Positions 22,384 to 64,000 of a stretch of 64,000 nucleotides of DNA are shown in pieces. The translations under genes were made by a program, and so were the position numbers. The stretch covers positions 497,803 to 561,802 of the forward strand of contig RHPI01003488.1 in the NCBI GenBank assembly GCA_009103225.1, read 5' to 3'. The stretch comes from Chlorokybus atmophyticus (taxonomy: Eukaryota; Plantae; Mesostigma and Chlorokybus algae). The stretch's first letter is position 1. Each line of letters begins with the position of its first letter. The notes beneath the pieces were generated by a model. That model was not told the DNA's origin. It worked only from the letters and a program-made list of their open reading frames with translations, and did not search any database.

Positions 22384-23330
22384 NGAATGGGTGCCCTACG
22401 CAGTGATGTGTTCTATCGGGTTGCTTGTGCGCCTCATTATGCTGAATGACTAGCTGTTGACGTCTGACTGCCAGCCACTGGCATGGCACGCACCTTGCTC
22501 TTTGTCCATAGTGTGCGTGCATGCATACAATCTACAACCTGTGCCGATCATGCACACACAACATGATGCAGCAAGTGCCGACGCAAGCACACACCAGCCT
22601 ACCCAGGCAAGCACACTTGTTGGACATGCAGTCAGATGGTCACCCCATGAAGCGCTTGTTGGCGAGGCTGAGACAAAAGATGCTGAGGGGACGATGCGCA
22701 TCAGTACTGCACCCCGCCACCACCGTTGCTGTACAAGTTGGTGTGTTTATGGCGCTGAGACTGCGATAATTGTCACTGCCAACAACACGCCGACAGACAC
22801 TGCACGGGGAGCATACGGCATGGCAAAACACGGCATGCCCGTGCGCGCGCGCAGGACTGCGGACACACACAGCTGCACCAGCACTGATACAGAACTGGGG
22901 AGAGGGGGAGGGCAGAGGGGGGAGGGGCGGGGAGGGGTGAGGGGGCAGTCACACGCTGCGCGTTCGCTGCATACACTGCTGCAGGACATTGGAGTGGAGA
23001 GTGACTGACGCTGCTACCCACGCATGCTGCAGGTGAAACACCGGATTTGTTGACGTGCATGCAAGACTGATGGGGGTGGTGAGTAGTTGGTAGGTAGTAG
23101 ACATAGCGGCGAACTAGCTAGCAGCAAGACAACAAACTTGAGCCCGGTGTCTGTGTCTGTGTCTGTGTCTGTGTCTGTGTCTGTGTGACTGTGCTGATGC
23201 TTGCATGCCATGACTTTGAGTGAAGTTGTGTATACACTTGCATGAGCAAAATCCCCGTTGCATCTCTTGTACTCTATGTATGCATGGTGCTTGTCCCTCG
23301 GCATGCCAAATACGGGTAGCACGACGGCAG
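21100..23330 (+). mobile_element. Penelope-like element copy D, heavily decayed: 5' pLTR end, GIY-YIG relic, gap/deletion, RT thumb, 3' pLTR
   Basis: TAGCGCGGTGGT at 21206. QYTYRTL...RYVGLTQTALQ near 21750-21840. LLDMQSDGHPMKRLLARLRQKM near 22620-22690 matches copy C LHAMHADGHLLKKLLATLRQRM. Purine-rich pLTR and GCATGCA..CTGATGGGG at 22890-23110. Confidence 0.65.
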
Positions 23331-23334
23331 TCAG

Positions 23335-23843
<509 letters not shown>

Positions 23844-23899
23844 NGTTATGCTACCCGAGTTGATGCACATGGCGTTTATCTCCAGGCATCACCGATGTA

Positions 23900-26800
23900 T
23901 AGTACGTCACGTACCTTTGTTCACCGCCACGTCAGCTCTTCGACACGTTTGCCTGTCACTGTCAGATTGACCTTGAACTCACTCTCGAACAGACTCTCGC
24001 TCCAATGAATAAAGAGATCTTCGTGGAGTATCTTCGGCGCCTGTTTGCCAGCTGGTATACAAGCCCAAGGTTCAGTTGTTACTAAGAGAGTGACTGGCTA
24101 GTGCGCCAGAAGCGTGCTGCATTCTTACGGCTTGGCCAAGGGCACATTCCCAACGTCAGCCTCGGCCGCATCGCAGGCAAGGTGACGGTGCATTGCTGCA
24201 TGGTATGCCCGCTAGACTGCATGCACAAGCAGCAGGCATGGTTGGGGTAGATTGGAGCTCTTAGCCTTCAAGTTGAGCACGTTGGAGGCCATTGCCATTG
24301 TGCTCAGGCGCAGGTACGTAGGCGTTGCAGCACGATGGCTGAGGCGGACAAGGAGGGCAACCAGATCTCGTACTGGCCGCACATCCCCGACCGCTTCAAC
24401 ATCTTCATCAGCGACTGGATCGTCTGCAGCCATGGCCTGGAGTACTGCTACAGGTACGGCGAGGACCACCGCATGACCAACAACATGAAGTGGGAGGACC
24501 AGGTCACAGAGGACGACTGTGAGATGTTCCAGGACGAACTGGATGATAGGGAGCCACTTGACGTCAGCAACGACTACACAATCCTTGACAACGACATGTG
24601 CACTTGCGCTGCTGGTTGTGCTGACTTGTGTGTAACACCCATGCATGGACAGGACTGCGTGCTTCCAGCATCGACCAGGGGGATGCAAGAGCTGCCTTGA
24701 CTTCGTCAGCATGGTGCGGGCGAAAAGGGAGCAAGCCAAGCAGCAAAGGGGAAGGGGAAGGGGAAGGGGAAGGGGCGCCTTGCCTTGACTGGCTCAGCGT
24801 GCCAGTTGGCAACACGGGGTAACTACTACAACAGTTGCTGGACATGTGTAATGCATTGCTGCATCAGCTTTTGCAGTATTTCGTGCATGGTAGGAAGCTT
24901 GATGTGGTGAGATGCAGCGAGCAGCATCCAGACTGACGGAAGGCTGTGCTGCAGGGTTGCTGAGGATAGGCGAAGGTGATGAGACCGTCTATGAATGGTT
25001 CATGAGTGCACCACATACCATTGTGCACAACGACACCGGGTTGCCATTGTGGCGCTTCTGTGAGCTCGCAGGCATGTTGTATGGAATGCGGTCTCTGTAT
25101 GCACCAATGTGGATGTTAGGACAAGATTGTACGCCGTTGTTGATACTTCAATGTGTATGTCCTGTATAGTATGGATGTGTATGTTGTGGTAGCTGGAGGT
25201 ACTTTCATTCGTTACATATCGGTAGTTGCGTATAGGGTTACAACAAACCTGTCATCATCACATGTGCGCACATGCATCACCACCAGATGCTGAAGCGTGG
25301 CGAGGTTGTCTCTTTGCAATTGCTTGGAAATATGCGCTCTGACCAAGCAACCGATTGAGTATACTGCATTGCGCATGCAGCGTTCACACGAAGAAAAGCG
25401 CCACCTTTCGGGGTGGCGCAGTGACACTTCTCAGTCGACCACGCAGTAACACTGCTGCATTTGTATTACACGGTCTGCTTGGGCAAAGCAGCCAGCGCGC
25501 TTGTGATTGAACAAAGTGTTACTGTCACTTTCAAGTCACCGCACATTGCGCCAACACCGATATGTAGCATATGTGACAAGACATTGTACATGTGTCTCGT
25601 CACAAACGAGGACCTGGCCACAATGACCGTGTAAGCCAAGCACCAATGGATTCAGGAAGTGTTGTTTCCGATGCAGCTGCGCAATCCTTCACTCTGCGCA
25701 ACACCTTAGATTGCGCAACTCCAGCTTCGTCAGCCGCCGCTGCATGCGGACTCTATGTATGTGAACTAAAGCCTCTGATGATGTGGTGGGCATCATCTGG
25801 GTAGGTGGGTGATGAGCTCAGTGGCGGCCACCTGCTAGCAACCATGGCTATGTATGAGGTAAGTGCATACAGCGCCTCGCTTTGCCAATATGCACTCTGT
25901 TTGGCTCGGCTTACATGGAACGCAAGCGAGGAAGAGTTTGACTTCATGCAGCACATGGGTACGTGTCGAGCACGCTTCTGTTGCTTGGGTAGGGGTTGTC
26001 ATCCGTTGCAGTCGACCAAGACAACTCCCTTCACCACAATTTCTTGGGCTCCAGCGTGTACCTCAGAGGTGATTGGTTGAGTTGTTCGAGAGTCTGTCCA
26101 CCATTTAGCACAGTGTGTTGGGTTGACTGCACGTCAATTGTTGTGGCATCATATGCATACTGTCATGTAGCCCTCCCATGCAATGGTTACGAACGCACAC
26201 AACATAATACGCGAGCACGTGCACGCATGCACACTCTTTCTTGCTCTGTCCTTGCTTGCACATTTGCACTTATATGCATGTGTGAACAGGCTGGGTGTTT
26301 TGCACCCACGGCTACGGCCGCGAGTGTTGCGACGGGTGCGCAGTTGACTACCGCTAAGACCAACAATGCTCTCTGGGATGCGCATGCTACCGAAGATGAC
26401 CTCTTGTACTTCACCAGCGCCCCAGATGACAGGAAGCCACTCAACGTATTTGGATTGTACGTGGTGCTCAAAGGCGAAAGGTATGTGTTGTATTGCAGCC
26501 TTGCAGTATGCTTGCTGCAGCATCACGTAGCTGCAGCAAGCATTTTATGCGTGCTGGTTGGCAATGTAGTACAGCTGCTTCAACTCATTTCCCCTCTTTT
26601 TCCCCTCTTTGCTGTGACAGGACAGCATCGCCGTGTGGGATGCATGTGATGTTTAAACTTTGTTGCTCGGAGTCGGCAACATGCGCACAAGTCGAAGAAA
26701 CTCTCGTGGTTGACGCGCACGACAGCCTACTTGGGGATGCGCCACATGTGAGATTTGTGTATCAGCACCTGTGAGTGAAGTAACGACCAGGCGTGGCATA

Positions 26801-37293: not shown

Positions 37294-38451
<1,158 letters not shown>

Positions 38452-39544
38452 CTACTTTTGTAGTGCACACTGCTACCGCAGTAAGTAGACCGAGACCAGC
38501 TACATTTGGCTTCACAGTCGCCATACGTTCAGTGCTTGTCAACCGTATTGCATCAGCCAAAGACATGTATCTTGCGCAAAGTGCAGCGGGCGGCACTTAT
38601 GTTGCGTGCATATGCACCACACATTGGTGAATAGTTCAGGCAAAAGTTGTGTCACCGCTATTGCTGGTACCAGTGCTGCAAAGGAATGCAGCCTTGCTGG
38701 GGCACCTGGGGCAAGCCATGCTCAACGTCGCGGCAGGGCCTTGTTGTTACATGATTGTTGGCGTCTTATGCCAGTTTATCAACCGTGCTGGTTTCACATA
38801 TGAACAAACGTGTTGCAGCTGGCACACAGCAGTACAGCACTGGTCTTGTGGCGATGTTAGACAAGCGCAATGTGCCTACTTAAGCAGCCAAGATTAGGCT
38901 AGCCTCACAGTGCAAGTTGTGCAAATGCGTGCAAACAAGACACAAAGGTATGATGGCATGCCCACAACCACGCAAATAAGATCAATCTATTTGCTAACGT
39001 CAACATGCTTGCATGAAAACCGCACAACGCGACACTCAACTTCCGCTGCAACAAAGATCGCTTGCTATGGAAGGGAGGGAGCTCGACGTACAACTGCATG
39101 TGCAAGGTGCTGTTGCAGAAGTGTACTGCCGGTAGGAGCCAATGTTAACAGTGGTGCCTGACTTCTTGGCGTTGTTGTTATGGGCATGCACCTGCACTCA
39201 ACTGAGCATATGGATGTGCCTTTATTGCGGTCGCATCAAGGCATGTGTACTGCATGAGCGCACCACATATCTGGCTGGCATGAATAACTTAACATAAAGC
39301 AATGCTGTACAGTGTTCAGCAGCTAGCCAGCAAATTGAAAGAGAATGATGTGTGCCACATCATGTGGCACAGACATGGCAGCATGCCGTAGGTACTAGCT
39401 TGTGAATGTTCATGCTGGCTAAGCTGTTGCTTTGTTCCCACCTGATGTGCCTTTCTTGTTGCTGCAACAAACTCAGAATGAATGAATGAATGTGCAACAG
39501 CCCACCACAACGAGGACAACCCCGACAGCGCTTATGCACCTTGT

Positions 39545-41925
39545 TGTACTCTGGCGACGGGCACCGCCGGAGGTCACTGGTTGTGCAAATGCTTGCAGCC
39601 TTGGAAAGTCTTCAGGAAAACGGTTGGTATTCTTCGTTGCCCGCGGGCCGACCAGTCCTTTGATCACAGCTACATCGTAGGCCATTGCAGCAACGTGTTC
39701 CTGCTTGTGGTAACCCAAGATCCTGAGGCAGAGTAAGTCTGTCAAAGCACTTATCACAATTGGCCAAGGTGTTTTGCATATGTGCTCACTGGTACTCTGC
39801 GCTTTTGCGGTCTCGAATGCACGCAAACCACACTGCCATCTCGGGGTCCCAAAACACTCCGTCGTACTTGGAAGTGCGTGCTGGTACGCCAGGCATAAAG
39901 GGGCTCAGGGTTACAAAAGGAAAGCAATCTTTAGTACGAGCACAGCTGCACACAACCTCAACTCACGTTCTGGCAGGTCTTCGCTGTCAGTCCCTATATC
40001 GCTGCCAGCATCGTCACGCTGGCTTGGCAGTAAGGATGAAGAGCGACGTCGTGACTGCTTGGTTGCTGGCTTTTGCTTGCGTTCACTAAATGGGGAGTAG
40101 CGTGTGCAGTTTGTCCAGCAGACAGCACTAGTTGCTGATTGTGCGTAGCCGCTTACCATGCCTCAGGTGTTGCTGGTGCGAGCTTGGCCCGTTTTGGCTG
40201 CGCGCGCTGGCCTGATCTAGTGACCCCTGAAGTTCCACACCAGTATAGCTGAAGGAATCGCCCTGGCAGCAGTTATACAGGACTGCATGCAAGGTATGAA
40301 ACTCACGACCAACTTGGTTACATACTTTTCAGGCATGTTGAGATAGGCGACTTGCTGCCTCCAGCATGACGCAGGTTGTAGCTGTGCGGGCTGTCACACC
40401 TGTCAGGCAAGCATATCAAGTGCCATGCGGTCGTCATCAGTGGCATTGCTGTACCTGTCTGATTCTGCTCTTGCCAGGTTCTGCTGCGCTCTGCGTATCG
40501 GCCTGCGAACTTCACAGACACGTTGGGTTGAGAGAGACAGTCACTCTGGCCTTTGTCGCGAGTATGTAACCACGCATGCGCAGGTGGCAGAGTATGTAGT
40601 CAACAAGTATTGCCACTACGCCTTTGCCTGTAGCAGAAAAGCTAGACCGCTGCAAACACGAATGTTACCATCATGGGCTGTTCCCGCTACGCCTGTGGCC
40701 TTGCCTGCCCCTTGTCGCACATGTTCACCCTCTACTGCTTCTTTCTCGCCATCGGGATGTACTTTGGTTGTTACAGCATGATTATCGATTGGGTTCCGCC
40801 TCTTGCGCGTCACCCGTTGAGCTGCACAACACAGACAATGTCACACGCCTCTAGAATTTGCAACCAACTAAGGATCATGATGTCGATTGCATTGGCTTGT
40901 CTGTACCTATGCTCGGAGGAGTGCGCATTATTTCCATAACGAATACGACATCATCGTCGCTGTCATCAACGGCAACAAAGCCATTGAGGTTGTTGTCCTT
41001 CGCTGCAATGGCTTGATCACCGTCCCCAAAGTCCTCACAATAAATGCTTTGGTTTGTGGCGGCAAGCGGACCATCCCTTTCCACGAGTGCCTGGCACACA
41101 ACGCAGCATTGAGTACTGCTTCCCATGCTTGGTTCTTATAGCGCGACAACAGCTGAGGGCTTACCTTGTCATAGGCTAGGGCAGCTTCCTGCTGTGTGGC
41201 GAAGCAACCAATATAGCGACGAGCGCTATCTCTTAGGTGTATGCTCGACACCCATGGTTTTGGAGCCTTGGGCCGGTTTTTGCCATAGAAGTAGACGCCC
41301 CTATACTTGGTGTAACCCCCTGTGGGTGCCACTGGTTGGTGTACAAAGATGGTATACTTGACTAATGTGCATGCTAGTGGCGTCCATGCATGCTTGCCAG
41401 CCCGTGTGTAAGACATAAGACAATGCTGTCTATGAGTGATCTCTCGCTTAATCCATAAGGACAACTGAACACTATCAATGACCTTATGATCGGGATTTGA
41501 CAAGTGACAAGGGAACAAGAATCCAATCATTGATGCTTACACACCATCAGTAGCCTCCATGCCTACATCCTCACATGTCACGTGTTGTGCACATGAACAG
41601 GCAATGCTGCATGCACAGCTGCTCTGTTGCAGTCCTTGAGATCGCTTAAACCAAAATAAACTGCAACCGGGACATGCTCTCGTGAAACGATGGACAAGCC
41701 CGCGACCACTGCTGCTTGCTAGCACTCCCTTGCAGATGCATTGACAAATACACGACCGTATGCAACCTCAACTACAACTCCACGCCGTATTGAGAATGGT
41801 CACTGGCAAGCAGGCCACTTCCGGCGTTTGGTCTTGCATCCTCAACAGCTGCATTGCCACTTGAACGACGGAGTGTCTCAGCAAGCTACCACTCACCCAA
41901 GATGTCACTTACGTTTGTGCGGCAT
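39545..41925 (-). pseudogene. Multi-AP2-domain gene, copy A (decayed; two AP2 domains)
   Basis: TKYRGVYFYGKNRPKAPKPWVSSIHLRDSARRYIGCFATQQEAALAYDK|ALVERDGPLAATN and RTSKYDGVFWDPEMAVWFACIRDRK|ILGYHKQEHVAAMAYDVAVIK...TNRF. Linker exons contain stops. Confidence 0.8.
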
Positions 41926-42455: not shown

Positions 42456-42975
42456 ATGCAAGTCAATGCACACAAGTCTTTTGTGCTTAAAACTTGCTGT
42501 GCATAGGTTGTGCTGGTGTCCCAGTGCTGGTATACAGTTCTTGTGTACAGACTTTGTCGTTGATGCTGACTAAGGCCTATGCTAACGGGTCAATTCGGCA
42601 CAGGCAGAATGCCTGCAGCCATTCTGTGTACGGTGGTCTCATGTTGCGGCAGGGATATCAGAACAGGAGAGGCATGGCGGCGAGAGTCCAATCAGTCAGC
42701 GTCGTCGTCGTCTGCGATGCTGTCGTGAACACCTGCTGCTGCTTCACCAGACTTGATGCCCACGCCTCTGTTGCGCAGGTGGTGATCCCCCTTGTTATGT
42801 CTGTTCTGCCCTGCCTGCCTCTCCATTGCGTTGGTTGTGTTGTGTTGGTAGGGTCCCAACTTTTAGAGTTTGTTGTAATGTAAAAGCTGTCTAGGCCCCC
42901 ACCCAAATTGATGCAAGCGTGTGTGTAAGTGTGCATTTGTTTTCATCATTTTGCTTTATATATATCGGCTATGAA
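42456..42975 (+). repeat. 5' pseudo-LTR of element B (direct repeat of 46411-46965)
   Basis: Colinear ~520 bp repeat, e.g. GATGCTGACTAAGGCCTAT and GGTAGGGTCCCAA are present in both copies. Confidence 0.92.
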
Positions 42976-45900
42976 TCCTGATTGACTCAAGCGCGTTGCC
43001 ACATGCCCACGCCTTAATCCCATTGCCAGAGCCCGCCCAAGGCAGGTCACTCGGGCCATGCACTTAGTTGGTTTGGCATCAATGTGCATTGTGGTGTGGC
43101 TGTGCATTGCTTGCGGTATTGCAAAACTTGCAGTAGGGGGCCTGGTACAGATTTGTGCACAATTGTATACATTTATCGGTGTGTAAGTGCTGCTGGCATC
43201 CCATTGGACAACGCCCTATCCATACCTGAAGATTGGGATGCCTAGCGCCGCCGTATTCTGCAAGTGCCCAGCTACTTTGAGCCTCTCCAGTTTACAACAG
43301 ATACATGATAAACACATGTTTCATCTGCATATCGCTGAAACGCTGGACCCCTTGACAGATACGCATGTGATATATGTTATGTATCCAACTTCCAAATACA
43401 AAAAGTAGTATGTGGGTCTTACTGCTCTAGCTGCTTTCGAGCATTTTAAGTTGCATGCACAAGCGGCAAACCAACCAACGGTTACACCTTTAGAGAAGGG
43501 TATGCTAACGTGGGGCTGGACGCTTGGGGTATTACACCGATTCACAAATCTTCATTACGCCGTTTGCCGACGACGCAGCTTGGCGCAAAGCAGCCCGTGA
43601 GCATGAACGCGAATGGATCCAACTTTTATGGATTGCTTGCCCACGGGGCTACAACTTCGAGGCCAAGGGCTCCACAAGGTCACGTAATCTTAGATCACGT
43701 GCACGTGTGGCAGTAAGACACAGAGTGCAACCAGTACAACATGTTGCACTGCCTGCGCAAGCGCTTGTTCCACGCCAATTCGGATATCGTAATTATACCA
43801 AAAGGTTATAGCATTAGTCGTGCATGCAGCGCGGCTCTTTCACTATTAACATGCTCAAGGAGTACAAACGAAAGAACTTGTTTCGCATGCTTAATCCATT
43901 GCTAACAAGACAGCCTGTGGAGTTGAGTTTGGAAGATCGCAGTGCCACACCCTTGATCAAAGCGTTAAGAAGGCAACCGTGTTCCTGTCAACTACACGCA
44001 GCAACACACAAACAACCGCAAGGGATGGTAATTCACTGCACATTCTCAAGTGCAGTGGCTAACCTCTTGCATTTGACAGGGTGTATGACGGCTGCCGCGT
44101 CCCAACTACTAGACCATGTGCAGCAAACTTTCGTACAACCCATGGTGCTCTAAACATACAAGAACACCCTTAGTCGAGCCGTCTGCAATAGGTCAGCAGT
44201 GACATGTTTGACTTTGTATGTGCAACAGTCTGTGCTGGATGCAGAGTGTGTATGTTATGCACCGCATCTTGCTGCCCATTCGCATACTCAACTATGACAT
44301 GTGGTGGGTTGCGACTATGCTATGTTTCAGTCACCAACGTGGCGCAGCTACCAACAGCAGGGATAAAGTACCGACCCCAGGCAGCACCATGCATGGAGTC
44401 GTGTGTCATGGCTGTTATGTTAGCTGTGTGGGAATTTAAAGAGGTGATGGATAACAAGCACAATCAGCCCGGACTCTTCACCGAGTGGGGATTAGCGGTA
44501 GTGAAGGCATTGAGGGAGAATTTAAATGCCAACAACAACCTTCCAAAGGTCCCAGCTCCTACGTATGAAGCAATTAATTGCCGGTTGGTAAGGGAACTGC
44601 ATGATTTTTTTGTATATACGGAAGTAGACAAGTGTAGCGGAGTGTTTGCTATAATGTGCAAATGATACTATTGACATTGTTACGTGCTCAGCTGGACAAA
44701 GGCATGTACACACTCGTGGAAGAGAACAGATTGGCAGTGTTGCAACGACATGCCATCTTGAACCATGAGCATGCGTATCAGTAGGTGCATGCAGGTGCTG
44801 CTAAACTACTGCATCTGTGACATGACGTTGAAGCTACACGAAGACACCCCCTCCCCCCCAGCTGGCACACNNNNNNNNNNNNNNNNNNNNNNNNNNNNNN
44901 NNNNNNNNNNNNNNNNNNNNNNNNNNNNNNNNNNNNNNNNNNNNNNNNNNNNNNNNNNNNNNNNNNNNNNNNNNNNNNNNNNNNNNNNNNNNNNNNNNNN
45001 NNNNNNNNNNNNNNNNNNNNNNNNNNNNNNNNNNNNNNNNNNNNNNNNNNNNNNNNNNNNNNNNNNNNNNNNNNNNNNNNNNNNNNNNNNNNNNNNNNNN
45101 NNNNNNNNNNNNNNNNNNNNNNNNNNNNNNNNNNNNNNNCCCCCCCCCCCCCCCCCCCCCCCGCGCCCCAGGTTTATTGCTGCATCTTGTGACACGTTAC
45201 TCATATCAGCTAGTGTTTGGCTAACCAGAGCATACAAGTGCATAATGGCATTGTTTCACTTGTTGTGGGCGGAGACAATGCAGATGCCAGGTTACACACC
45301 AGCTAAGTTCAAAAGGATTCGCTGGGCGTGATGAATCCGGTGCAACGCTGCAACACCACACGCTCGCAGCAAGATAAGCACCAGCCCATGCTTGTGCACG
45401 CATATGACTTTGCCAACTAGTATACAACTTGAGGCATGAAGAGTTGCTAGTTTGCATGCGCGACTTGGTGGCAGCGATCTTTGATTGTGCCAGATGTACA
45501 CACAACAGGGCTAACACTTATTATGTGACATTCCACAACGGTAACACCACACATGTGTGGGGATGTGGCCGTAACATTGCCAACTTGCAGGAAGGTCAAA
45601 CACGTGTGTTTGACAAGCACATGTTGCATGAAATATTGACGTAACTGATTACTAACTTGTATGTCCAGACTGCCGCAGATGAGCTACACCAGCAAACTAT
45701 ATGCATACCCATGGGTAACAATGCTGAGGAATGCCTGGCAAACTATCACTTGGGATACTTGGAGTTGAAGTTTGCACGCAAGTTGAAGAGGGCTTTGGGT
45801 GACCATGCTTTACTAGCAAAGATGGCAACAAGTGTGTTGAGGTTTGTGGATGATTTATTGATGGTCAATGTGCCTGATTGTGCGGAGTTTATGCATAAGT

Positions 45901-46410
45901 CCCCACCTGCACTGGCTGGAGGCATATACCCACAGCGCATTTTTACACCAATTGAGTCCTCAACAGGCAATTCCGTCTCATTCTTGGATGTTTTGCTGTT
46001 CTAGACAACTGGTGTGGGCTTGTGCACACGGATCTACAGCACACTAACATTGCCTCAATTGACCACCATCCCTCGGCGACGGGCGCCACATCCACAGAGC
46101 AATATTGCAAGAGTCTTGAAGATGGGAGTGGTAGTCTCACAGTGTATCCGTTCTTGCGTTAGTCAACATACGCTCACACTTCCTCAATGACACGCTAGAC
46201 TTGTTGAATGCTATGATGGCTCCGGGGTATAACAAGCAGCAGCTGTTGGGAGCGTTGTGCAAGTGGATGTCTCGTCAGCAGGGGATCATCTACGGTGGTA
46301 CCCACGGATATCTGTACCACCTCGTGCACGGAAGGTTGCAACAGGCTGCCTGAGGTAACTTGAGGTGAGTGTACAGGTAAGATAAGTGCGGGGAGCAGGT
46401 TACCGTCCGC

Positions 46411-46965
46411 ATGCAAGTCAACGCACACAATGTTGTAATTGAACTTGCTGTGCATAGGTGGTGCTGTGTCCACTGCTAGTATATAGTGCTTGTGTGTATA
46501 GAACTTGTCGTTGATGCTGACTAAGGCCTATACTAACGGACTAATTTAGTTGGCACAGTGCCTGCATCCATTGTGTGTGCGGTCGTCTCATGTTGCGGCA
46601 GGGATATGAGGACAGGAGAGGCATGGCGGCGTTGTGGGGGTCCAGTCAGTCAGCGTCGTCGTCGTTTGCGTTGCTGTCGTGGACACCTGCTGTTGCTTCA
46701 CCGGACTTGACGCCCACGCCTCTGCTGCGCAGGTGGTGATCCTCCCTACTGTGTCTGTTCTGCCCTGCCTGCCTGCCTCTCTTCAGCATTAATTGTGTTG
46801 TGTTGTGGTTGATGTTGGTAGGGTCCCAAGTCCTAGAGTTGGTTGTATTGTAAAAGCTGTCTGTGGGCCCCCACCCAAATTAATTTAATGCAAGCGTGTG
46901 TATGAGTGTGCATTTGTTTTTCATCCTTTTGCTTTATATGTATGTGTGACATTAATAATGAATTC
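46411..46965 (+). repeat. 3' pseudo-LTR of element B
   Basis: Second copy of the 42456-42975 repeat. Confidence 0.92.
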
Positions 46966-49014: not shown

Positions 49015-49205
<191 letters not shown>

Positions 49206-49311
49206 CTCCCTCCCGCTCGCTCGCTGCGTGGGCGCGCGTGCGTGCGCGCGTGCGTGCGTATATATGCATACTTAATGGAATATACAAACACTCTCAGGTT
49301 AGTGCGTGCAG

Positions 49312-49450
49312 GTACATGCCATGTGCAGTTTTGATAGGGGCGGTTACGCTGGCGGCGCTCGCGTGCACACCACTGCCCACCACGTGTTTCGTCGCCTCGC
49401 CACCCTTGAGGGCATCTCACGTGCGATTAGCACCATAAGGACTCTCAACT
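49312..49450 (+). pseudogene. Duplicated, frameshifted last exon of the thioredoxin-like gene
   Basis: tgcag|G TAC ATG CCA TGT GCA GTT TTG ATA...ACG CTG GCG GCG CTC GCG = YMPCAVLIGAVTLAALA, versus YVPCAVLLEADTLAALA at 38304+. Confidence 0.85.
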
Positions 49451-50496
49451 GCTTTCAAGGTGTGCGCTTGTAATGGTTTAGTTCTGCTTAAATAAGTGAC
49501 GTTGTGCCTCACCAGTTGTGAGTTACAATGCAACATTCACATGTTCAGCGCATGTCAATAATGATGCAGCAGCCCAATTGAGCTGCTGCATCATTATTGC
49601 GAGACACGTACAGGCGTACATGCCTTGTACTAAAGTGTATCTTGAACAAACCGCAACGAGCAGTGCTTGTGTGTGTGCATATGCATCAGACGTTGGTGGA
49701 TAGTTGTTGGGCAAAAAGCGTGTTACCAGTATGTTGAGGTGATCAAGCAAACGGAATGCATGCAGCCTTGCTGCTGATGCACCTGAAATAAGCCAAGCAC
49801 AACGAGGTTGGCTCAAAGAGTGCGTATAGCCCGGTGGTTGTACATTAATCTCTCAGACTATTGTATAGTATAGTATGCAAGGATTGTGGCATGCATGAGA
49901 ATGTAGCAAACATGCATGCAGTCTGCACACTACACCATCGCACTCTTATATTCACCACCGGGATGTCCAAGTTCACTACTTATCTACCTTCACTACTGCC
50001 CATACCCCGTGCAACACACATGCATGCACGTGTAATTACCTGTACAACACGACCAGGGCAGCGTTAACAACGGTAGTCAGCAGATGTAGCGGTGCAGCAG
50101 TGGCAATGCAGTCAGCAGGCAGCCCATGAGTTCCCTTCCCCTCCCTCTCCCTTCCTCCTTCCCCTCTGTCTCCCTCTCTCTCTTCCTCCCCCTCCTGCTC
50201 CTGTCCCTCCTCCGCCTCTCTCTCCCTCCGCTCCTCCTTCTCTTCTCTTCGGCCGCAGTCGCTGCGACTCGCAACCCTCGGCGCTGCTGATGTGGCAGGG
50301 CCCCTCTGCCATGTCTCCCTCTGGCACACGCATGCAGGGCGATTGCCAGCACTGTCAGCCCTGCGTTGCGCAGTGTCGCTGCTGACGGTTAGGTGTCGGT
50401 GGTGGGGTTGGGTGGTGGGGTTGGTGTCCTCCTTCGTTCGCACGGGCACGCTGTGTTACCAACAGCCTGCTCCCCATGCAGTGCATCTGTCGCTCA

Positions 50497-52753
50497 TCAC
50501 CGGTAGTGCTGCTGCAAGTACTTGACCACCATCATGTAGAGCAGCATTGGTGCTGTGCAGTAGACATATGCATCTGTCTTTGACATTCTTTGTCGCAGCG
50601 TCGCCAACAGCTTTTTCAGCAAATGGCCGTCAGCGTGCATGGCGTGCAGTAAGTCCGCCATGGCTGTGATGAAGTGCGTCCTATACGTACACAGGCGTAC
50701 AAACCGTGTGTACTGCGACTCGACCACACCAAGCTTCACGCTGTTTGGTATGTTGGAGGCTGGCAGCGGTGCTCTGTGACGTGGAATACCGCGGAAGGCT
50801 GGCAGCTCCTTTTTGCTGTACAGTTTAGTACAAATGCCATCAGCGATTTGGAATATGGACAAGTCCAAGAAGGGGAGTGCTTCACCCATTGCTGTGCGCG
50901 ACACCGTGAGGATGTCCCGCGGATAGCGTCCACCTCCGGGCACGGTTGGATCCACATTAATCAGTCATTCAAAGTCCGGAATGGCCACCACAAACAAATC
51001 ATCAATGTAACGTAGGACGTTGCGAGCGTACAGCCCCACCAAGTGTCCGTGGCCCTGCATGCGCAGCCGTTGCATGAAGTCCAGCTCATAAGTCAATAAG
51101 TAGCCATTGGCCAAGTGCACGCCAGCATTATTGCCTATCGGGATTCCCACTTGCTGCCTGTACAGTTCGTCACTGCTCGTCCGGATGTACAAGTTGCGTA
51201 GCAAGTACTGCAGCATGTCACTCAGCGACTGCACGGTGAATGTGCGCCAGTTGCTGTCGTCATTGGAGGTGTGTTGCGCGCCAGCGCTGCGCTCCAGTGC
51301 TGTCGCACCGAAGCATCTGGTTGAACACTCAGGTGTAAGTGGGTAGCGCGCTGTCGTCTTCCACTGCATGTCGAACGTGGCATCCACCAAACGCCTCATG
51401 CGGAGCAGCAACTCCTCATGCTGTATCTGCGTGGACAGCGTAGTAAAGTCATAAGTTTGGAGCTGCAGACGTCGCCTTTTGTCGATAGCTGTGCGAGTGG
51501 TATTGAACACCGATTGCAATCTACCAAACGCCAGCTGGTCAGTGATGATCCAGCTGTGGTGCACGTCCGGCAGGCCCACCGTCTCCGCCCACAAGTCATG
51601 CCAGATGGGGACCATGGCTCGGTACACTCTTGTCAGCCACACGCTGGCATCGGTTAATGCGGTCTCTGACGCTGCTGCTATGAAGCGGGGTCTCGGAGGA
51701 TCTTTGTGCAGTTTGTACAACATGTACAAATGCGGCAGCCTTGGGGCTTGCTGTGGCTTGGCCATACGGAAACTGTGCGCATGGTTCCACTCCGCGCGCT
51801 GTTGCAGTACGGTGTGAGGCGGTACATCTTCACGCACATATGTACTGGTACATAGCTCCTTGGTCAAGCAGAGCAGATAGTGTTTCTTGCAAATGGCTAC
51901 AAGGGTGCCGCTACATTTGTCCACCTCTGTAATGATGAACTGACGATGCAGCTGTCGCAAGGCCGCAACATCCAACGGTGTCACTCTGCGTGATTGACTG
52001 CTTTGCAGTTGGTACTCAGGGGCCGCAGCAACCACTGCCGCACGCTCGTTCACCAAGCGCAACAACGTTGTCACCCACTGCTGTAGGATGAACGGCTGTC
52101 CCCAGTAGTCCTCGAGGTCGTTGGCAAAGCGATGCACTGCCGACGCAATGGCTGGCAAGCACACGTCAATATCTGCTGGCACCTGGTTGCGGAACTTGCC
52201 ACCACGTTGCAGCATCTCACGCAGCACCGCTGAGTCTGTCACTCGGTTGTAGTCGCAGCTGACCACGTGCTGCAACTGTGCATGCACCTGTGTTCTCCAT
52301 TGTGGCGAGGTGCAGATGCAGTTAGCAGCTTCCATCACTTCCACTTGTTGCTGCGCAGTCGATTGCAACACATCTTTGGTCCGATTGCACAACATGCGCC
52401 CTACTGTTTTGGCTGCAACGCCACACCACCAGCGGTTGGCCGAGGCGTGTGCGCACTTGTCTTGGCAGCGTGTCCAGCACTGTGGGGTGTGACAGCAGCT
52501 TTTGCAGTTCCAAAGCATTCGCTGCGCTATTGGCAAATGGGCAAGCTACCAACAGGCGGGCATTGCGGGTTTGCGGCAACGCTGTGGGGTAGTTCAGCAG
52601 CAGGCGCTGTATTACACCTGTCAAAGCGTGTGCATGGGCGGGTAGTACTTGCAGATCTTCTGGTGCTGTATGCTGCAGCACAGCTAGCATCTTGTGCAAG
52701 TTTTGTAGCTTGAAGTTGAGTAGATTGGCGAGGGTGAATTGAGCAGACTGCAT
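50497..52753 (-). pseudogene. PLE reverse transcriptase of element C (three frameshifted segments)
   Basis: FANSAANALELQKLLSHP, CICT...HVVSCD...LREMLQRGGKFR, TEVDKCSG, LPHLYMLYKLHKDPPRPRFIAA, TYDFTTLSTQIQH, YRQQVGIPIGNNAG, YIDD at 50998-51009, LPFLDL..CTKLYSK. Confidence 0.93.
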
Positions 52754-52761
52754 GCGTTCAG

Positions 52762-53346
52762 TTAGCAGCTGGATGCGTCGGAAAAAGTCTCTGTATCCGA
52801 AGACTCTGCCAGCTGTTCATGGTGCGATTGTTGTTGTTGGTGACGCAGTTGTTGGCGTCGCCAGTGCGGCAGTCTTGCTCGCTTGTAAGGGGCATGTTCG
52901 ACATTGTATCCGCGTGGTACCGCAGTCCTTAAGCGTTGCGTCCATAACCACTCTTTCTGTGCAGCCCGCTGGTGCCAAGCTGTGTTGCTTTCGCTTGGCC
53001 AGGGGGGTACGGACTCCAAAGGTGAAACACCCCACCATTGCACAGGCAGGGTGCGCATTGTCAGTTCCAACAATGTGGCACAGTCACCACGTGCAGCACG
53101 CCAGTGTTGTTGGAAGCGCTGGAAAGCCGAATTCACTGTCATGCCCACATAGCACTTCTTGGCACCATTGAGCAAGTAGATCACGTAGATAACGTGATGG
53201 CTTTGGACCGGAGAGAGGCGCCAGGGCGTGTGCAGAATGCGTTTCACTTTGTTGCGAATGCGGCGCAGCACTGGTAGTTGCCAATGTAGGTGAACGTCCA
53301 GCACATGAGCTTGTATGGCTTGCCAATTCAACGTTGGTGTTGACAT
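52762..53346 (-). pseudogene. GIY-YIG endonuclease domain of element C
   Basis: HHVIYVIYLLNGAKKCYVGMTVNSAFQRFQQH...AAQKEWLWTQRLRTAVPRGYNV: IY/YVG pair, catalytic Arg, Glu, and GYN. A frameshift separates it from the downstream linker. Confidence 0.88.
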
Positions 53347-54684
53347 GATGCCTTCACAGTCGGTGCTGTGCTGTGCATGGCCAACGGGGGTGTGTAGCGT
53401 ATATGCAATGCTATGCATGTGACCCCATTGCATTGTGCACATGCATGACACATGCAAACACAAGCGCACTCGCACACGCCAGCAAACAACAACTTGTTAC
53501 ACCACCGGGCTACCTATACATACTAGGAAGCTACCTTCGCTAAGCCCTTGCCCCGTTAGTCAACATGCATGCGTAGTTACCTGTACACAATGGCGATTCA
53601 AACAGTTAGGCACCGGGTGAGGCTGAGCGGTAGCAGTAGCAGACAGCAGACGGACTCCCCCTTCTCTGTCTCCCTCTCTCTCCGCCTCTTTCCTGCCGCC
53701 TCCCTGCTTGCAGTACGTGCGCTCCTTGCACTACGTGCTGCTGTTGACGCAGCCAGGGTTGCATCGCCTACGTGTGTGTTGCAATGTGCTTGCATGCTGT
53801 GAATGATGTCATGCATGCCTACAACTACTGGCAGCATGTCCTGTACAGCACGTCACACATCATGTACACACGGCGGGGGGGAGGGGGGAGGGGGCATAAG
53901 GCAGCAAGAAGCATGTTGCTTGACATTTGTTGGCAGGATATGACACGCCTGACAGTGTTGTCTTCCAGCACTTGTCAACAAATATGTCAACTGGCACGGA
54001 GCAGCACATCGCCGGTCCTTTGACGATGTGGTTACGAAATGATCCTACCCAAAACTCTTTGGTAAGAGTTGCGCTAGCCACATAAAGTAAAGCACATGCG
54101 CAAACAAGGCACGGAGATTTGATGGCATGCATCCCTTTCAAACATGCAAATCAAGAGCGATGCACTGGCTACCGTTAACATGCGTGCCTACAAAACCCAT
54201 TACAACCCGACATGTAACTTCAGCTGCCACAAAGGCTACTCGAAAAGGAAGGAGGGAGCTCGGTGGACTATACCTCATATGGTGCGATTGGGCAAGGTAC
54301 TATGTCAACAATGTAGTGCCGGTAGGAGCCAATGTCAACGGTGGCCTGTCTTCTTGGCTTTTGTGCCTTGCGCATGCACTTGCACTTCAATGATTATACG
54401 GACGTTCCTTGACGCATACGGTAACTACCCACACGCATACTGCATGAGCACAATCAGCTGAAGAAACGCTGTACACTCTTCAGCAGCTAGCCAGCAGCAA
54501 TCTGGATGATGTAAGATAGACACAGCAGCATACCGTAGGTACTCACATGGCTTGTCATGCTTGCTCCGCTGCTGGCTTGTCCCCACCTGCTGGGCCTTTC
54601 TTCTTGCTGCAACAAACCCGTGATTGTGCAACAGTTTATCCATGAACCAGGACAACCGGACAGCGCTTCCATTATACCTTTTTG

Positions 54685-57600
54685 TACTCTGATGACGACC
54701 ATGGCTGGAGGCCGCTGGTTGTCCAACTGCTTGGAGCTCCGGGAAGTCTTCAGGGAAACGACCAGCATTGGTGGATGCCCGCGCGCAGCGTGCTTGTAGC
54801 GCGGCTTTATCGTAGGCCAATGCAGCAGCACGTTCGTGCTGACTGCAACCCAAGAACCTGAAGCAGATTGAGTCTGTCAGAACAACACTCACCGCGGCTG
54901 GCCAAGATGTTGGACATGTGCTCACTGGTATTGTCGGCTTTTGCGGTTTCGTATGCGCGCAAACCACACTGCCATTTCTGAGTGCCAATGCACCCCCTTG
55001 TACTTGGAAGTGCGTGCTGGTATGACATCAAAAGGGTCAGGTCACAAACAGGGAACAAAGCAAGTGCAGCATAAATGCAAGCACAACCTTAACTCACATT
55101 CTTGCAGGTCTTCTGGTTGGCTGTCAGTCTCTGTATCACTGCCAGCGTCGTCGCGCTGGTTCGGCAGTAAGGATGAAACGCGACGTCGCAACAGCTTTGT
55201 TGCCGGCTTTTGCTTACGTTCACTGCATAGGAAGTCACGTAGTACCGTGTGCAGCAGATAGCAGTAGTTGCTGGATGTTCTTGGCCGCTTACCATGCCTT
55301 GGGCGTTGCTGGTGCAAGCTTGGCCCGTTTTGGCTTTTCGCGCTGGCCTGATCTAGCGTCTCCTGAAGTTGCACACGAGTGCAGCTGAGGAATCTGCCCT
55401 GGCAGCGGTTACACAAGACTGCATGCTACGTACGAAATTAACAACCAATCTTGAGTTACTTCTCAAGCATGTTGCGGCAGGCGACTCAATGATCTCATGT
55501 TCGACCTCGGCGCCAGCACCACCCAGACTGCCGCTGGCCGACCTGTTACGCCTATCATGCAAGCATATCAACTGCTATGCGGTCGTCACCAGTCTGGCAT
55601 TGTTGTACCTGTCTGCTGTTGCCAGGTTCTTTTGTGGTCTGCGCATTGGCCTGCGAACTGCACAGACACCTTGAGATGAGACAGTCATTCTGTCATCGTG
55701 CGCAAGTTACCATGCAAGCGCAGGTGATGGAGAGACTACTGAACAACCGTTGCTATTATGCCTTTGCCTTCAGTAGAAAAGCTGGACCGCTGAGAGCACA
55801 AAACATTACCATCATGGCTTCTTCCCGCTACGCTCGTGGCATTGCCTGCCTTCTGTTGCAGATGTTTACCCTCTACTGCTTCCTTCTCACTATCAGTCTC
55901 ATCCAAGTCATCAGTGAATCTCAGATGGTTTGTCACAGCCTGATCGCCATCTCTCTCCAGCAGCGCCTGTGGCAATTGTCTTTGTCCAATCACCAGCATG
56001 CGCGCGCGTGGATTGCAGACCATATCAGCATGTGTGCAAATGTGGGTGCGTGGGTGCGTGGGTGCGTTTGCGTGCGCACTCAACGAATATCAGCGTGCGT
56101 ACAGACCTTCATTCGTGTGTGTGCATGCATGTACAAGCTCTGACCTTATCATAAGCTCGAGCAGCTTGGACCTGTGTGCGGAAAAGGCCAAGGAAGCGGC
56201 GGCCTGTGACAGGAAGCTGAATGGCAGCGCCCCAGTGATTAGCTCCGGCATGGACATAGTAGCGGACGCCCTTGTACTTGGAGCGCTGTTTGTGTGTAGT
56301 GTGTGCACCTGTTTCACAAAACAACTGTGTTGAAAATGTAAACATGCTCTCACTGATGAGGGTGTGAGAGTGCATGCGCCTACCGTCTTGTATGGATTGC
56401 ACTGCACGGGCTACAGACGTGTCCATTGCATGATGCACATCGCGTTGCCTGTGTGTGCTCTGCGTCTGTTGCTGCTGCCTCCCAGGTGCACCGTGTGCGG
56501 CTTGCTGAGCAGCCTCGCTTGTCTTGTTGCAAGCATTCATGGTGCGGGTCTCCTTGCAGCTGTGTTGGGATTGCCTGTGAAGAGTCGCAACAGGTGTGGC
56601 CAGGGGACTGCATTGTGAGCACGTCAATAAAGGACCACTGTTGCGCAATGCTAGCAATATGCAGTCAACTCACCGCAACGCAGGGCCAGGCTGCATCAAA
56701 GCTGGCGATTGTGGCGACTGGCCTTCAGCGCTTGTGCGGGTGGCTTTCATCGGCTTCCACCGCTTTCGCAAGCGTTGAGCTGCAGAAGACAGTAAAATCT
56801 TCTGCAGCTCAACACACCTCTAGCGTTTTCAACCAACGGAACACGTTCATGGCGTCTATTGCATAGGCTCGTATGTACCTATGCTTGTAGAAGCGCCCTT
56901 CACTTCCATCACGAACATCACATCATCGTCGCTGTCATCAACAACACCAGAGCCAAGGGTGTTGTCGCCCTCTGCTGCATTGGCTTGATCACTGTCCCCG
57001 AAGTCCTTACGAAACGTTCTTTGGTTTGTGACAACATGTGGACCATCCCTTTCCACCAATGCCTGGCACACAACACAGCATTGAGTACTGCATCCCGTGG
57101 TTGATCCTTAGCACGTGAAGACAGCTGAGGGTACCTGGTCATAGGCTAGGGCAGCTTCCTGCTCTGTGGCGAAGCTACCAAGGTAGTGACGACCGCCATC
57201 TCTCAGCATTATGGTCGAGACCCATGGTTTCGGAGCCATGGGCCGGTGTTTGGCGTTAAAGTGAACGCCCTTGTACTTGGTGTACTTGCGAGTGGCGTTC
57301 CCTGTGGGTGCCATTGGTTGGTGTGCATGCGAGGGGCGTCCCTTCAAGCTTATCAGGCGGTGTGTGCACACGACAATGCTGTATACAAGCGATCACTCAC
57401 GTTACCAAGTTGGGCGAACTGAACTCTCGACCAGTGACTCTAAACTCGGGGTGTAGACAAGCGATAGGGTCCAGAATACCAAAAGCTTGGAATGCTAACA
57501 CACGGTCAGTCAACTCTACACGTTCTACATCTCGAGTCACATGCGTCGTGCACATGATTAGACCATGCTGCATGCACAGCTGCTCTCTTGCAGTCCCTTG

Positions 57601-63550: not shown

Positions 63551-64000
63551 CTACACTTTGTGGATGTTTTTGTTTGGTGCAACACCTTGTGCAGCAATAT
63601 GCTTTTGGATGGTGTGCAAAATGAACACCACCACGACCACATCAAGCACGATCATGTGTGTGATGAGGGGCAAGGGTAGTGGCAAGCAAGTTGTCTTTGC
63701 CACCAGCGAAAGCGCCCTATGGCATGCAAGAAATAAGGGTGAGGCCGTTGGGAGCGAAGTGGCGGTTGTGAGAGCGAGAGTGGCGAAATTCGTGCGGCAA
63801 GTTGAGTATAAGGGCTTGGCAGTATATATCAGGGGTATGGTACTGTGCCAACATGCATGGTGTGCGGACAATGTGTGTAGAGTATATGCAGTGCTGTGAC
63901 TGTGACTCACACAACGCACATGACATATGCATCTAGCCAGCTATCACCATACGCCAACCAACTAGCAATTGATAACCACCGGGCTATGTCTACACGCTAT
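63551..64000 (-). mobile_element. Penelope-like element copy E, 5' region (continues beyond the window)
   Basis: ACCACCGGGCTA at 63975-63986. 63850-63990 aligns to 53370-53515 (HSTAYTLHT vs HSIAYTLHT). Confidence 0.7.

Follow-up and report, generated by a model that had tools for sequence, protein, structure and literature searches.

A dead, near-full-length Penelope-like retrotransposon of probable Chlamys type, with its endonuclease at the N-terminus, in Chlorokybus atmophyticus

In a 64,000-nucleotide stretch of Chlorokybus atmophyticus DNA (the window, meaning the whole stretch that was analysed), positions 49809-53899 on the minus strand constitute a 4.1-kb insertion that is missing from a paralogous stretch. 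Its sequence and the modeled folds of its products make it very probable that this insertion, here called copy B, is a dead, near-full-length Penelope-like retrotransposon of the Chlamys type, with an endonuclease at the N-terminus of the encoded protein. Chlamys elements are the N-terminal EN+ Penelope-like elements (PLEs) of green algae, spike mosses and slime moulds (Craig et al., 2021; PMC8557442). In copy B, a single reading frame, now broken at three places, once specified a GIY-YIG nickase followed by a linker, a CxC module and, together with its thumb, a telomerase-like reverse transcriptase (RT). The family assignment rests on relatives of at most 35% identity and on predicted folds, because searches of Pfam, NCBIfam and PDB sequences were blank: scans of the four ORF pieces of copy B against Pfam and NCBIfam gave no match, and phmmer and family-profile searches of PDB sequences gave none except I-TevI, at E 0.13, for the endonuclease. 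A word-indexed protein search with the 523-aa RT piece was blank as well, but its length window does not admit relatives of 900-1150 aa and the blank is uninformative.

The limits of the insertion are defined by the paralog, in which 38304-38727 aligns with 49312-49804 and 38742-39259 with 53914-54449. Identity to the flanks of the element is 60-66%, and 14 bp in the paralog stand in place of 4109 bp here. A previous sequence-only reading had placed the element at 49815-53895; because host homology stops at 49804 and resumes at 53914, with only 14 bp between the two aligned parts of the paralog, those limits are right to ~10-20 bp. The paralog shows neither a target-site duplication nor a microsatellite at its host junction, the empty site. 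The features of copy B, of this empty site and of two related copies (A and C) are as follows.

11717-13680, plus strand: copy A, a 5'-truncated relative comprising the RT from the DK motif on, thumb, 3' UTR, box and tail (profile positions 388-827)
38727-38742, no strand: paralogous empty site (paralog alignment)
42456-46943, plus strand: copy C, full-length, of a more divergent family (endonuclease-linker-CxC-RT-thumb order)
49809-49841, plus strand: left half, copy-A-family 3'-terminal fragment (93% identity to copy A 13564-13591)
49842-49963, minus strand: 3' tail of the full-length element (read off the sequence; aligned with the ends of other copies)
49964-50496, minus strand: 3' UTR, pseudo-LTR-homologous region (72% identity to copy A 13198-13325)
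50955-50497, minus strand: RT thumb, C-terminal piece, 152 aa, with a natural stop (phmmer; identity to copy A)
50965-50967, minus strand: in-frame TGA between RT and thumb (one frame on either side; sense codon in copy C)
52536-50968, minus strand: CxC module, DK motif and RT fingers/palm (523-aa open frame)
52325-52813, minus strand: linker RVFGYRDFFRRI, from ~52807, and middle region (separate frame; profile match at positions 93-235)
53346-~52900, minus strand: GIY-YIG endonuclease, without CxxC between GIY and YIG (ATG at 53346; phmmer; model)
53400-53776, minus strand: upstream pseudo-LTR, a diverged copy of the 3' end (local alignment to the 3' end)
53510-53580, minus strand: intron-like module, 71 nt, CAG/GTAACT ... 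CTAAC ... TAG/CCCGGTGGT (read off the sequence)
53775-53899, plus strand: right half, split copy-A-family 3' fragment (~89% identity to copy A 13599-13676)

Three-frame translation located all of the domains claimed by the earlier reading on the minus strand and at the positions it gave, in the order GIY-YIG endonuclease, RxxGYRxxxRR linker, CxC module, DK motif, RT (YIDD) and thumb. The endonuclease ORF contains VIY...YVG together with the R, H, E and N residues, the Asn (GYN) being read straight off the sequence; in the alignment Tyr54, Tyr66, Gly68, Thr70, Arg77, Glu132 and Trp135 are invariant and His81 is nearly so. In phmmer searches this ORF aligns with the N-termini of RT-matching proteins (E 3e-16 to 1e-7), and its structural model (pLDDT 85) has the I-TevI catalytic domain as its top fold match (TMt 0.77), followed by UvrC, EndoII, Hpy188I and Eco29kI. 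The consensus of the linker among relatives is RxxGxRxxxRRxxxL. The 523-aa ORF contains CICT...HVVSCD...LQRGGKFR, DKC, motif A (YDFTTL), motif B (GIPIG) and YIDD. In the family alignment the CxC module follows the pattern CICT...QHV...D...LRxxxxxGGKFR, with Cys73, Cys75, His90, Gly112 and Arg116 nearly invariant, and Cys73, Cys75, His90, Asp206, Lys207, Asp363, Gln461, Gly464, Gly468, Asp512 and Asp513 are invariant or nearly so across the module and RT; DKC occurs in copies A, B and C, Asp206 and Lys207 being invariant. The thumb piece matches the C-terminal 110-130 residues of the RT-matching proteins (phmmer, E down to 2e-17) and is 64% identical to copy A at the amino acid level. The protein ends with this thumb, at 50497-50499; the endonuclease lies upstream of the RT, and none is C-terminal.

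The frame had been described as broken by about three frameshifts. The count of three lesions stands, but only two are frame changes (~52870-52808 and ~52440-52395), the third being the in-frame TGA, which is a lesion rather than a conserved codon. Copy C carries a sense codon at that position, which speaks against recoding of this TGA as selenocysteine, a feature of some Naiads; that reading was rejected.

Searches with the RT piece found 1493 relatives at E≤1e-3 (best 3e-47), with identities of 35% or less, and the commonest taxon in the nearest protein cluster of the protein atlas is Streptophyta. In the best full-length relatives, Pfam recognises a GIY-YIG domain at the N-terminus. In copy B the endonuclease and RT occupy different frames, and nested PLE pieces do exist at the locus, as would be expected had the two domains come from separate elements nested in one another, with the permuted order an artefact. 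We consider such an origin extremely unlikely, since the endonuclease, RT and thumb pieces match the same intact single proteins colinearly (900-1150 residues, e.g., 1026, 1054 and 1105), since copy C has the identical order with its endonuclease and linker within one ORF, and since a conserved linker and CxC consensus lies between both domains. The endonuclease is N-terminal to the RT in all 82 of the 82 endonuclease-bearing relatives and C-terminal in none. The claim of a single endonuclease-RT protein is thus borne out by intact public proteins and by the divergent copy C, which share its order.

The earlier assignment to the Naiad/Chlamys clade of PLEs with an N-terminal endonuclease agrees with the endonuclease-first order, the CxC module, the fingers insertion and the lack of a hammerhead. 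Within that pair, copy B is predicted to be of the Chlamys type, a refinement that follows from its lack of CxxC/CCHH cysteines, its motif A-to-B spacing, the position of the window copies outside the CxxC clade and the lack of a ribozyme. The endonuclease VIYVIYLLNGAKKCYVGMT has no CxxC between GIY and YIG, no upstream CX2-5CxxC and none of the CCHH cysteines. The spacing from motif A to motif B is 98 aa (Asp363 to Gln461), as compared to a median of 91 for Chlamys-type and 80 for Naiad-type proteins; this insertion, which is long relative to canonical PLEs (their spacing being taken from PMC8557442), is modeled as helices with a loop of low confidence. An unrooted tree of 117 rows was built from the window copies and retrieved relatives, with no outgroup, no curated named Chlamys or Naiad references and no sequences labelled as canonical PLE, Athena/Coprina or TERT. 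In this tree copies A, B and C group together (SH-aLRT 98); cysteine-less relatives surround them, and a 59-row CxxC clade (SH-aLRT 96) excludes them. The tree omits exact duplicates and any retrieved protein that spans less than 380 residues of the RT query, and copies A and C were entered with X at every break and stop. The placement of the window copies within the whole PLE tree we infer from architecture. That copy B is instead a Naiad, the animal-type PLE with an N-terminal endonuclease, gained for example by horizontal transfer, is very improbable: about 30 of the best 150 RT relatives are CxxC-bearing, Naiad-type proteins, and the CxC module and RT motifs are common to both groups, but the best matches are all of the cysteine-less type, the spacing falls within the Chlamys range, the endonuclease has neither the CxxC/CCHH cysteines nor the upstream CX2-5CxxC of Naiads, and the window copies lie outside the CxxC clade.

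The model of the RT (pLDDT 83.9) has telomerase as its top fold match. All 15 of the Foldseek matches with E≤1e-3 are TERTs (best E 4e-8), and TERTs also lead in VIA-align (Z 14.4-11 over 310-345 residues), with R2 at Z 11.2 over 214 residues. The predicted RT is telomerase-like in that TERT is its best structural match over the fingers, the palm and the region upstream. The modeled likeness is one of fold and not of membership; identities are 9-15%, there is no telomerase-specific context at the locus, and the copy B family is multi-copy and mobile.

Repeats of the pseudo-LTR (pLTR) type, which had also been claimed, were recovered by gapped local alignment with shuffles, the upstream arm (53400-53776) being 61% identical to the 3' end of copy B over 359 columns (z ~18-21 against shuffles); blastn at E 1e-4 did not detect this pair. 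The upstream pLTR starts with ACACACAC at 53776 and ends with a AGCCCGGTGGT box at 53501-53511 plus tail. The 3' tail begins at the CCCGGTGGT box (49954-49964) and closes with TGTACA, and the 3' UTR contains a CT-rich low-complexity stretch at 50132-50247 with tandem repeats (TRF). The intron-like module recurs at ends of the A/B family as CAG/GTAAYT, CATGCATG, CTAAC, ~42 nt and TAG/CCCGGTGGT. The upstream pLTR is as similar to the 3' end of copy A as to that of copy B itself, and it is no fresh duplicate of the latter. An arm identity of 61% is unlike a fresh partial-tandem insertion. A tentative suggestion from these alignments, which we think rather more likely wrong than right, is that the upstream pLTR may be inherited stably and transcribed as part of the unit, and not arise afresh whenever a copy inserts; if so, it would account for 61% arm identity beside a near-open ORF, and streptophyte algae would be added to the known range of the pLTR-promoter-intron organisation. 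A search for ribozymes (Rfam 15, E≤10) found none in copies A, B or C, in keeping with the earlier report of no hammerhead in the pLTRs.

A six-frame profile search of the window found three coding copies, at 11717-13065, 43551-46344 and 50509-53154. Short terminal fragments lie at 11352-11493 and 63825-63985, in addition to the split tail round copy B, and inverted boxes or fragments occur at 11483, 49828 and 63975. The previous count of five copies is only partly borne out, as three carry coding sequence and the rest are fragments. A further candidate coding fragment, at 22584-22752, gave tblastn/tblastx matches (E 1e-3 to 1e-5) but was not picked up by the family profile and is left uncounted. 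Copies and fragments together cover ~11 kb, or ~18% of the window. Copy C shares 26-54% amino acid identity with copy B in the same domain order; its direct pLTRs (42456-42965 and 46411-46943) are 82% identical over 541 columns, and it contains an assembly gap (44871-45139).

The two ends of copy B had been noted to carry short inverted tails. These are indeed present, at 49814-49841 and 53775-53847, and match neighbouring segments of the copy A tail (13564-13591 and 13599-13676). The best reading is that they once formed one copy-A-family 3' fragment, which the insertion of copy B (49809-53899) parted into two halves. The left half contains the AGCCCGGTGGT box at 49828-49838, and the right half is followed by a G-rich (G/C-rich) run at 53872-53895 at the host junction. 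The unit lies at a TGTGT stretch in the tail of this fragment, and on the minus strand it starts with ACACACAC, as observed at this single locus. Targeted insertion at (CA)n or (C)n repeats is a trait of Chlamys elements.

By analogy with Penelope and Chlamys-3_cRei (PMC8557442), transcription of such an element would start from the upstream pLTR and run across a short 5'-UTR intron. The GIY-YIG domain would then nick a (CA)n/(C)n-like target DNA, the freed 3'-OH would prime cDNA synthesis by the RT, and resolution of the intermediate would give 5'-truncated, tandem and inverted copies with tails (PMC8557442). Copy B itself cannot move autonomously. Three lesions in ~1030 codons, with an uninterrupted frame of 523 codons, point to a family that moved recently, and copy B might be taken not for a fossil but for a young or still-active element, or for a host gene that arose by domestication. 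We regard this as quite unlikely, given that the protein is interrupted by two frame changes and an in-frame TGA, that the element is multi-copy with 5'-truncated relatives and missing from the paralogous site, and that no protein more than 35% identical to it was found in public collections.

The suggestion that the element belongs to an uncatalogued family in this lineage is unsupported, as Chlamys elements have already been curated from Chlorokybus atmophyticus and Mesostigma (Craig et al., 2021; PMC8557442). The endonuclease-first (Naiad/Chlamys) type of PLE has been known since 2021, green algae included, and the features of copy B agree with the published definition of Chlamys. The discovery value is accordingly small, and the practical value is one of annotation: standard domain libraries (Pfam, NCBIfam) are blind to these copies, such that PLEs of this kind may be missed or mis-called in this genome. 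Modest additions are that copy B is nested, that its upstream pLTR is heterologous, and that a conserved box is accompanied by an intron-like module; these could inform how PLEs integrate and why introns are kept.

The window displays general PLE traits, namely pLTRs (copies B and C), 5' truncation (copy A), inverted fragments and tails. With canonical Penelope/Poseidon, Neptune and Nematis elements, copy B shares a GIY-YIG domain, a telomerase-related RT and the pLTR architecture, and its 71-nt intron-like module can be set beside the 75-bp intron in the pLTR/5' UTR of Penelope; copy B lacks two features of canonical PLEs, a CCHH endonuclease at the C-terminus and hammerhead ribozymes within the pLTRs. 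Naiads of invertebrates resemble it in placing the endonuclease first and in their CxC module, fingers insertion, pLTRs and lack of a hammerhead, but differ in having a CxxC between GIY and YIG (part of CCHH) with an upstream CX2-5CxxC, DKA rather than DKx, and a median A-to-B spacing of 80 rather than 98 aa. Copy B departs from Chlamys, whose minimal organisation is exemplified by Chlamys-1_meVir (PMC8557442), in that its protein is at most 35% identical to any retrieved relative, its upstream pLTR and its own 3' end share only 61% identity, it is nested in the tail of another family, and its ends carry the conserved AGCCCGGTGGT box. It is like Chlamys in its N-terminal GIY-YIG domain without CCHH or CX2-5CxxC and with R, H, E and N kept; in its CxC module, DK motif without a fixed third residue, long A-to-B insertion and telomerase-like RT; in its pLTRs, 5' truncation, inverted fragments, tails and lack of a canonical hammerhead; and in its size of ~3.9 kb and its host lineage.

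Searching the six-frame translation with a family profile identified three coding copies of the Penelope-like element (PLE) in the window: the element under study (copy B), a truncated relative (copy A), and a full-length, more divergent relative (copy C).

11717-13065, plus strand: copy A, 5′-truncated at the DK motif
43551-46344, plus strand: copy C, family profile match
50509-53154, minus strand: copy B, family profile match
11352-11493, inverted, upstream of copy A: terminal fragment
63825-63985: terminal fragment
either side of copy B: terminal fragment, a split tail

PLE copies and fragments account for 18% of the window (~11 kb), so that the sequence-only reading was fair in its estimate of about a fifth; the five copies counted there are reached if fragments are included, the coding copies numbering three. 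The coding region of copy B (minus strand, ~53,350-50,500) consists of four open pieces.

ATG at 53346, minus strand: endonuclease-like piece, 237-codon frame; VIY...YVG, then conserved R, H, E and N
minus strand, other phase: linker piece, 143-codon frame, first residues RVFGYRDFFRRI
minus strand: CxC/reverse transcriptase (RT) piece, 523-codon frame; CICT...HVVSCD...LQRGGKFR, DKC motif, motifs A (YDFTTL), B (GIPIG) and C (YIDD)
minus strand, phase shared with the RT: thumb piece, 152 codons, beyond an in-frame TGA at 50965-50967

Copy B is thus disrupted by two frame changes (~52870-52808 and ~52440-52395) and one stop; the earlier figure of about three frameshifts was close in number and differed in make-up.

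No match to the copy B pieces was found in Pfam, NCBIfam or PDB sequences, nor in a word-indexed protein search whose upper length limit, 1.75 times the query, left out the range in which relatives fall. Queried with the RT piece, an exhaustive HMMER search retrieved 1493 relatives (best E value 3e-47, identity at most 35%), one of them from the protist Amoebidium parasiticum; the nearest protein-atlas cluster comprises mostly Streptophyta. In the best full-length relatives (900-1150 aa), Pfam GIY-YIG matches within the first 200 residues, the copy B endonuclease piece matches the N-termini (E values 3e-16 to 1e-7), and the thumb piece matches residues directly following the RT match (E values down to 2e-17). 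An endonuclease profile detected the domain in 82 of 161 retrieved proteins, N-terminal to the RT in all 82 and C-terminal in none; nearly all of the others are fragments short at the N-terminus. Copy C (26-54% amino acid identity) has the identical domain order, and its endonuclease and linker share one open reading frame (ORF). An origin of endonuclease and RT from separately nested elements, which the sequence-only reading had named as its own refutation, is contradicted by these colinear relatives, by the N-terminal position in 82 of 82 proteins and by the order in copy C.

The predicted folds were examined for both domains. The RT model, built with 40 relatives (pLDDT 83.9, pTM 0.83), gave 15 Foldseek matches at E ≤ 1e-3, all of them telomerase catalytic subunits (best 4e-8). 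VIA-align likewise placed telomerase RTs (TERTs) first (Z 14.4-11; 310-345 residues aligned, model residues 40-523), ahead of R2 (Z 11.2, 214 residues) and group II intron RTs (Z 10.3, 182 residues). Penelope-like RTs are the sister group of telomerase, and the modeled telomerase-like fold is as expected. The structural alignments to telomerases, such as that of model residues 40-523 with Candida TERT 156-683, include the region upstream of the RT fingers, from the CxC module to the DK motif (residues 40-212), which hints that this region may correspond to the RNA-binding region of TERT. For the endonuclease model (pLDDT 85.2), the best match was the I-TevI catalytic domain (E value 4e-3, TM 0.77 on the target, rmsd 2.8 Å), followed by UvrC, T4 EndoII, Hpy188I and Eco29kI, all GIY-YIG nucleases.

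The N-terminal-endonuclease clade is characterized by the permuted order, a CxC module, a motif A-B insertion and a lack of canonical hammerheads, and within it Chlamys differs from Naiad in lacking the CCHH and CX2-5CxxC cysteine motifs, in having DK rather than DKA, and in its longer insertion (Craig et al., 2021; PMC8557442). Residues C73, C75, H90, D206, K207, D363, Q461, G464, G468, D512 and D513, invariant or nearly so in the family alignment, are all present in copy B. Its endonuclease lacks both a CxxC between GIY and YIG and any CX2-5CxxC-like motif upstream; such motifs occur in ~30 retrieved relatives. Motifs A and B are 98 aa apart in copy B, against medians of 91 in cysteine-less and 80 in CxxC-bearing relatives. 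A maximum-likelihood RT tree of 117 rows was restricted to non-duplicate proteins covering at least 380 query residues, with copies A and C read through and X placed at breaks. Copies A, B and C form one clade (SH-aLRT 98) among the cysteine-less relatives, outside a 59-row CxxC-bearing clade (SH-aLRT 96); built without named references or an outgroup, the tree supports rather than proves a Chlamys placement. None of the three copies gave an Rfam match (E ≤ 10) to a hammerhead, HDV-like or twister motif. Judged by its sequence characters, copy B is Chlamys, not Naiad.

The flanks of copy B (49312-49804 and 53914-54449) are 59-66% identical to one unbroken stretch, 38304-39259, in which 14 bp separate the two halves vs 4109 bp at copy B. 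This is a duplicated host segment of which only the second copy received the element. The bounds proposed earlier (49815-53895) differ from this independently derived estimate by no more than 10-20 bp. Farther right, 54910-57284 is paralogous to 39774-41314; the duplicated segment spans 38304-41314 and 49312-57284 (60-84% identity).

Copy C has direct pseudo-LTRs (pLTRs; 42456-42965 and 46411-46943, 82% identical over 541 columns). The upstream region of copy B (53400-53776) is homologous to its own 3′ end (61% identical; z 18-21 vs shuffles) and equally similar to the copy A 3′ end. Since ~1030 codons of the copy B ORF carry only three lesions, the 39% difference cannot be post-insertion decay. 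Two origins are conceivable: the upstream arm could represent an older piece of some related family, or it could be transcribed and inherited as part of the unit, and the latter would fit the published transcription start site within the pLTR (PMC8557442).

The inverted tails noticed earlier are real: 49814-49841 and 53775-53847 match copy A 13564-13591 and 13599-13676 (~90%, plus orientation), and in copy A just 7 nt lie between these two segments. The most economical explanation is that a short plus-strand 3′ fragment of the copy A family was already in place and that the minus-strand unit 49842-53774 inserted into it at a TGTGT stretch. This site and the first bases of the unit, ACACACAC, agree, as a single case, with the reported preference of Chlamys for (CA)n. 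A box, AGCCCGGTGGT, marks PLE ends (8 matches in the window vs 0.78 expected).

Large microsatellite arrays of 8-bp and CT/GA-type units lie near PLE copies or fragments (23254-24600, 37670-38290, 10700-11140 and 49020-49212), and two assembly gaps (10796-11038 and 44871-45139) fall within such arrays, a pattern that would be consistent with the microsatellite bias and assembly difficulties reported for PLEs. The window begins with a partial rDNA unit (1-2756).

1-1358: 18S rRNA match, from model position 452
1648-1801: 5.8S rRNA match
1990-2756: 28S rRNA match, first ~810 positions only, ending abruptly

The truncated 28S could mark the edge of an rDNA array, or the 28S may be interrupted. 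Just downstream, a 215-aa ORF (3875-4522, minus strand) resembles, by eye only, a pogo/Tigger-type transposase, with a helix-turn-helix and the start of a DDE domain.

The ends of the copy A and B family share an intron-like module: CAG|GTAAYT, CATGCATG, a CTAAC-like branch site, ~42 nt, and TAG|CCCGGTGGT.

53510-53580, minus strand: intron-like module
13493-13588, plus strand: intron-like module
11483-11600, minus strand: intron-like module
49954-50045, minus strand: intron-like module

In the module of copy B's own 3′ end, branch site and AG are mutated. The putative module resembles the 5′-UTR intron that Penelope and Chlamys-3_cRei carry in the pLTR. The minimal organization of Chlamys described by Craig et al. 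is that found here, and because Chlamys elements were curated by the same authors from Mesostigma viride and Chlorokybus atmophyticus (PMC8557442), both the kind of element and its occurrence in this lineage have already been published, a statement that covers the kind and not the particular family.
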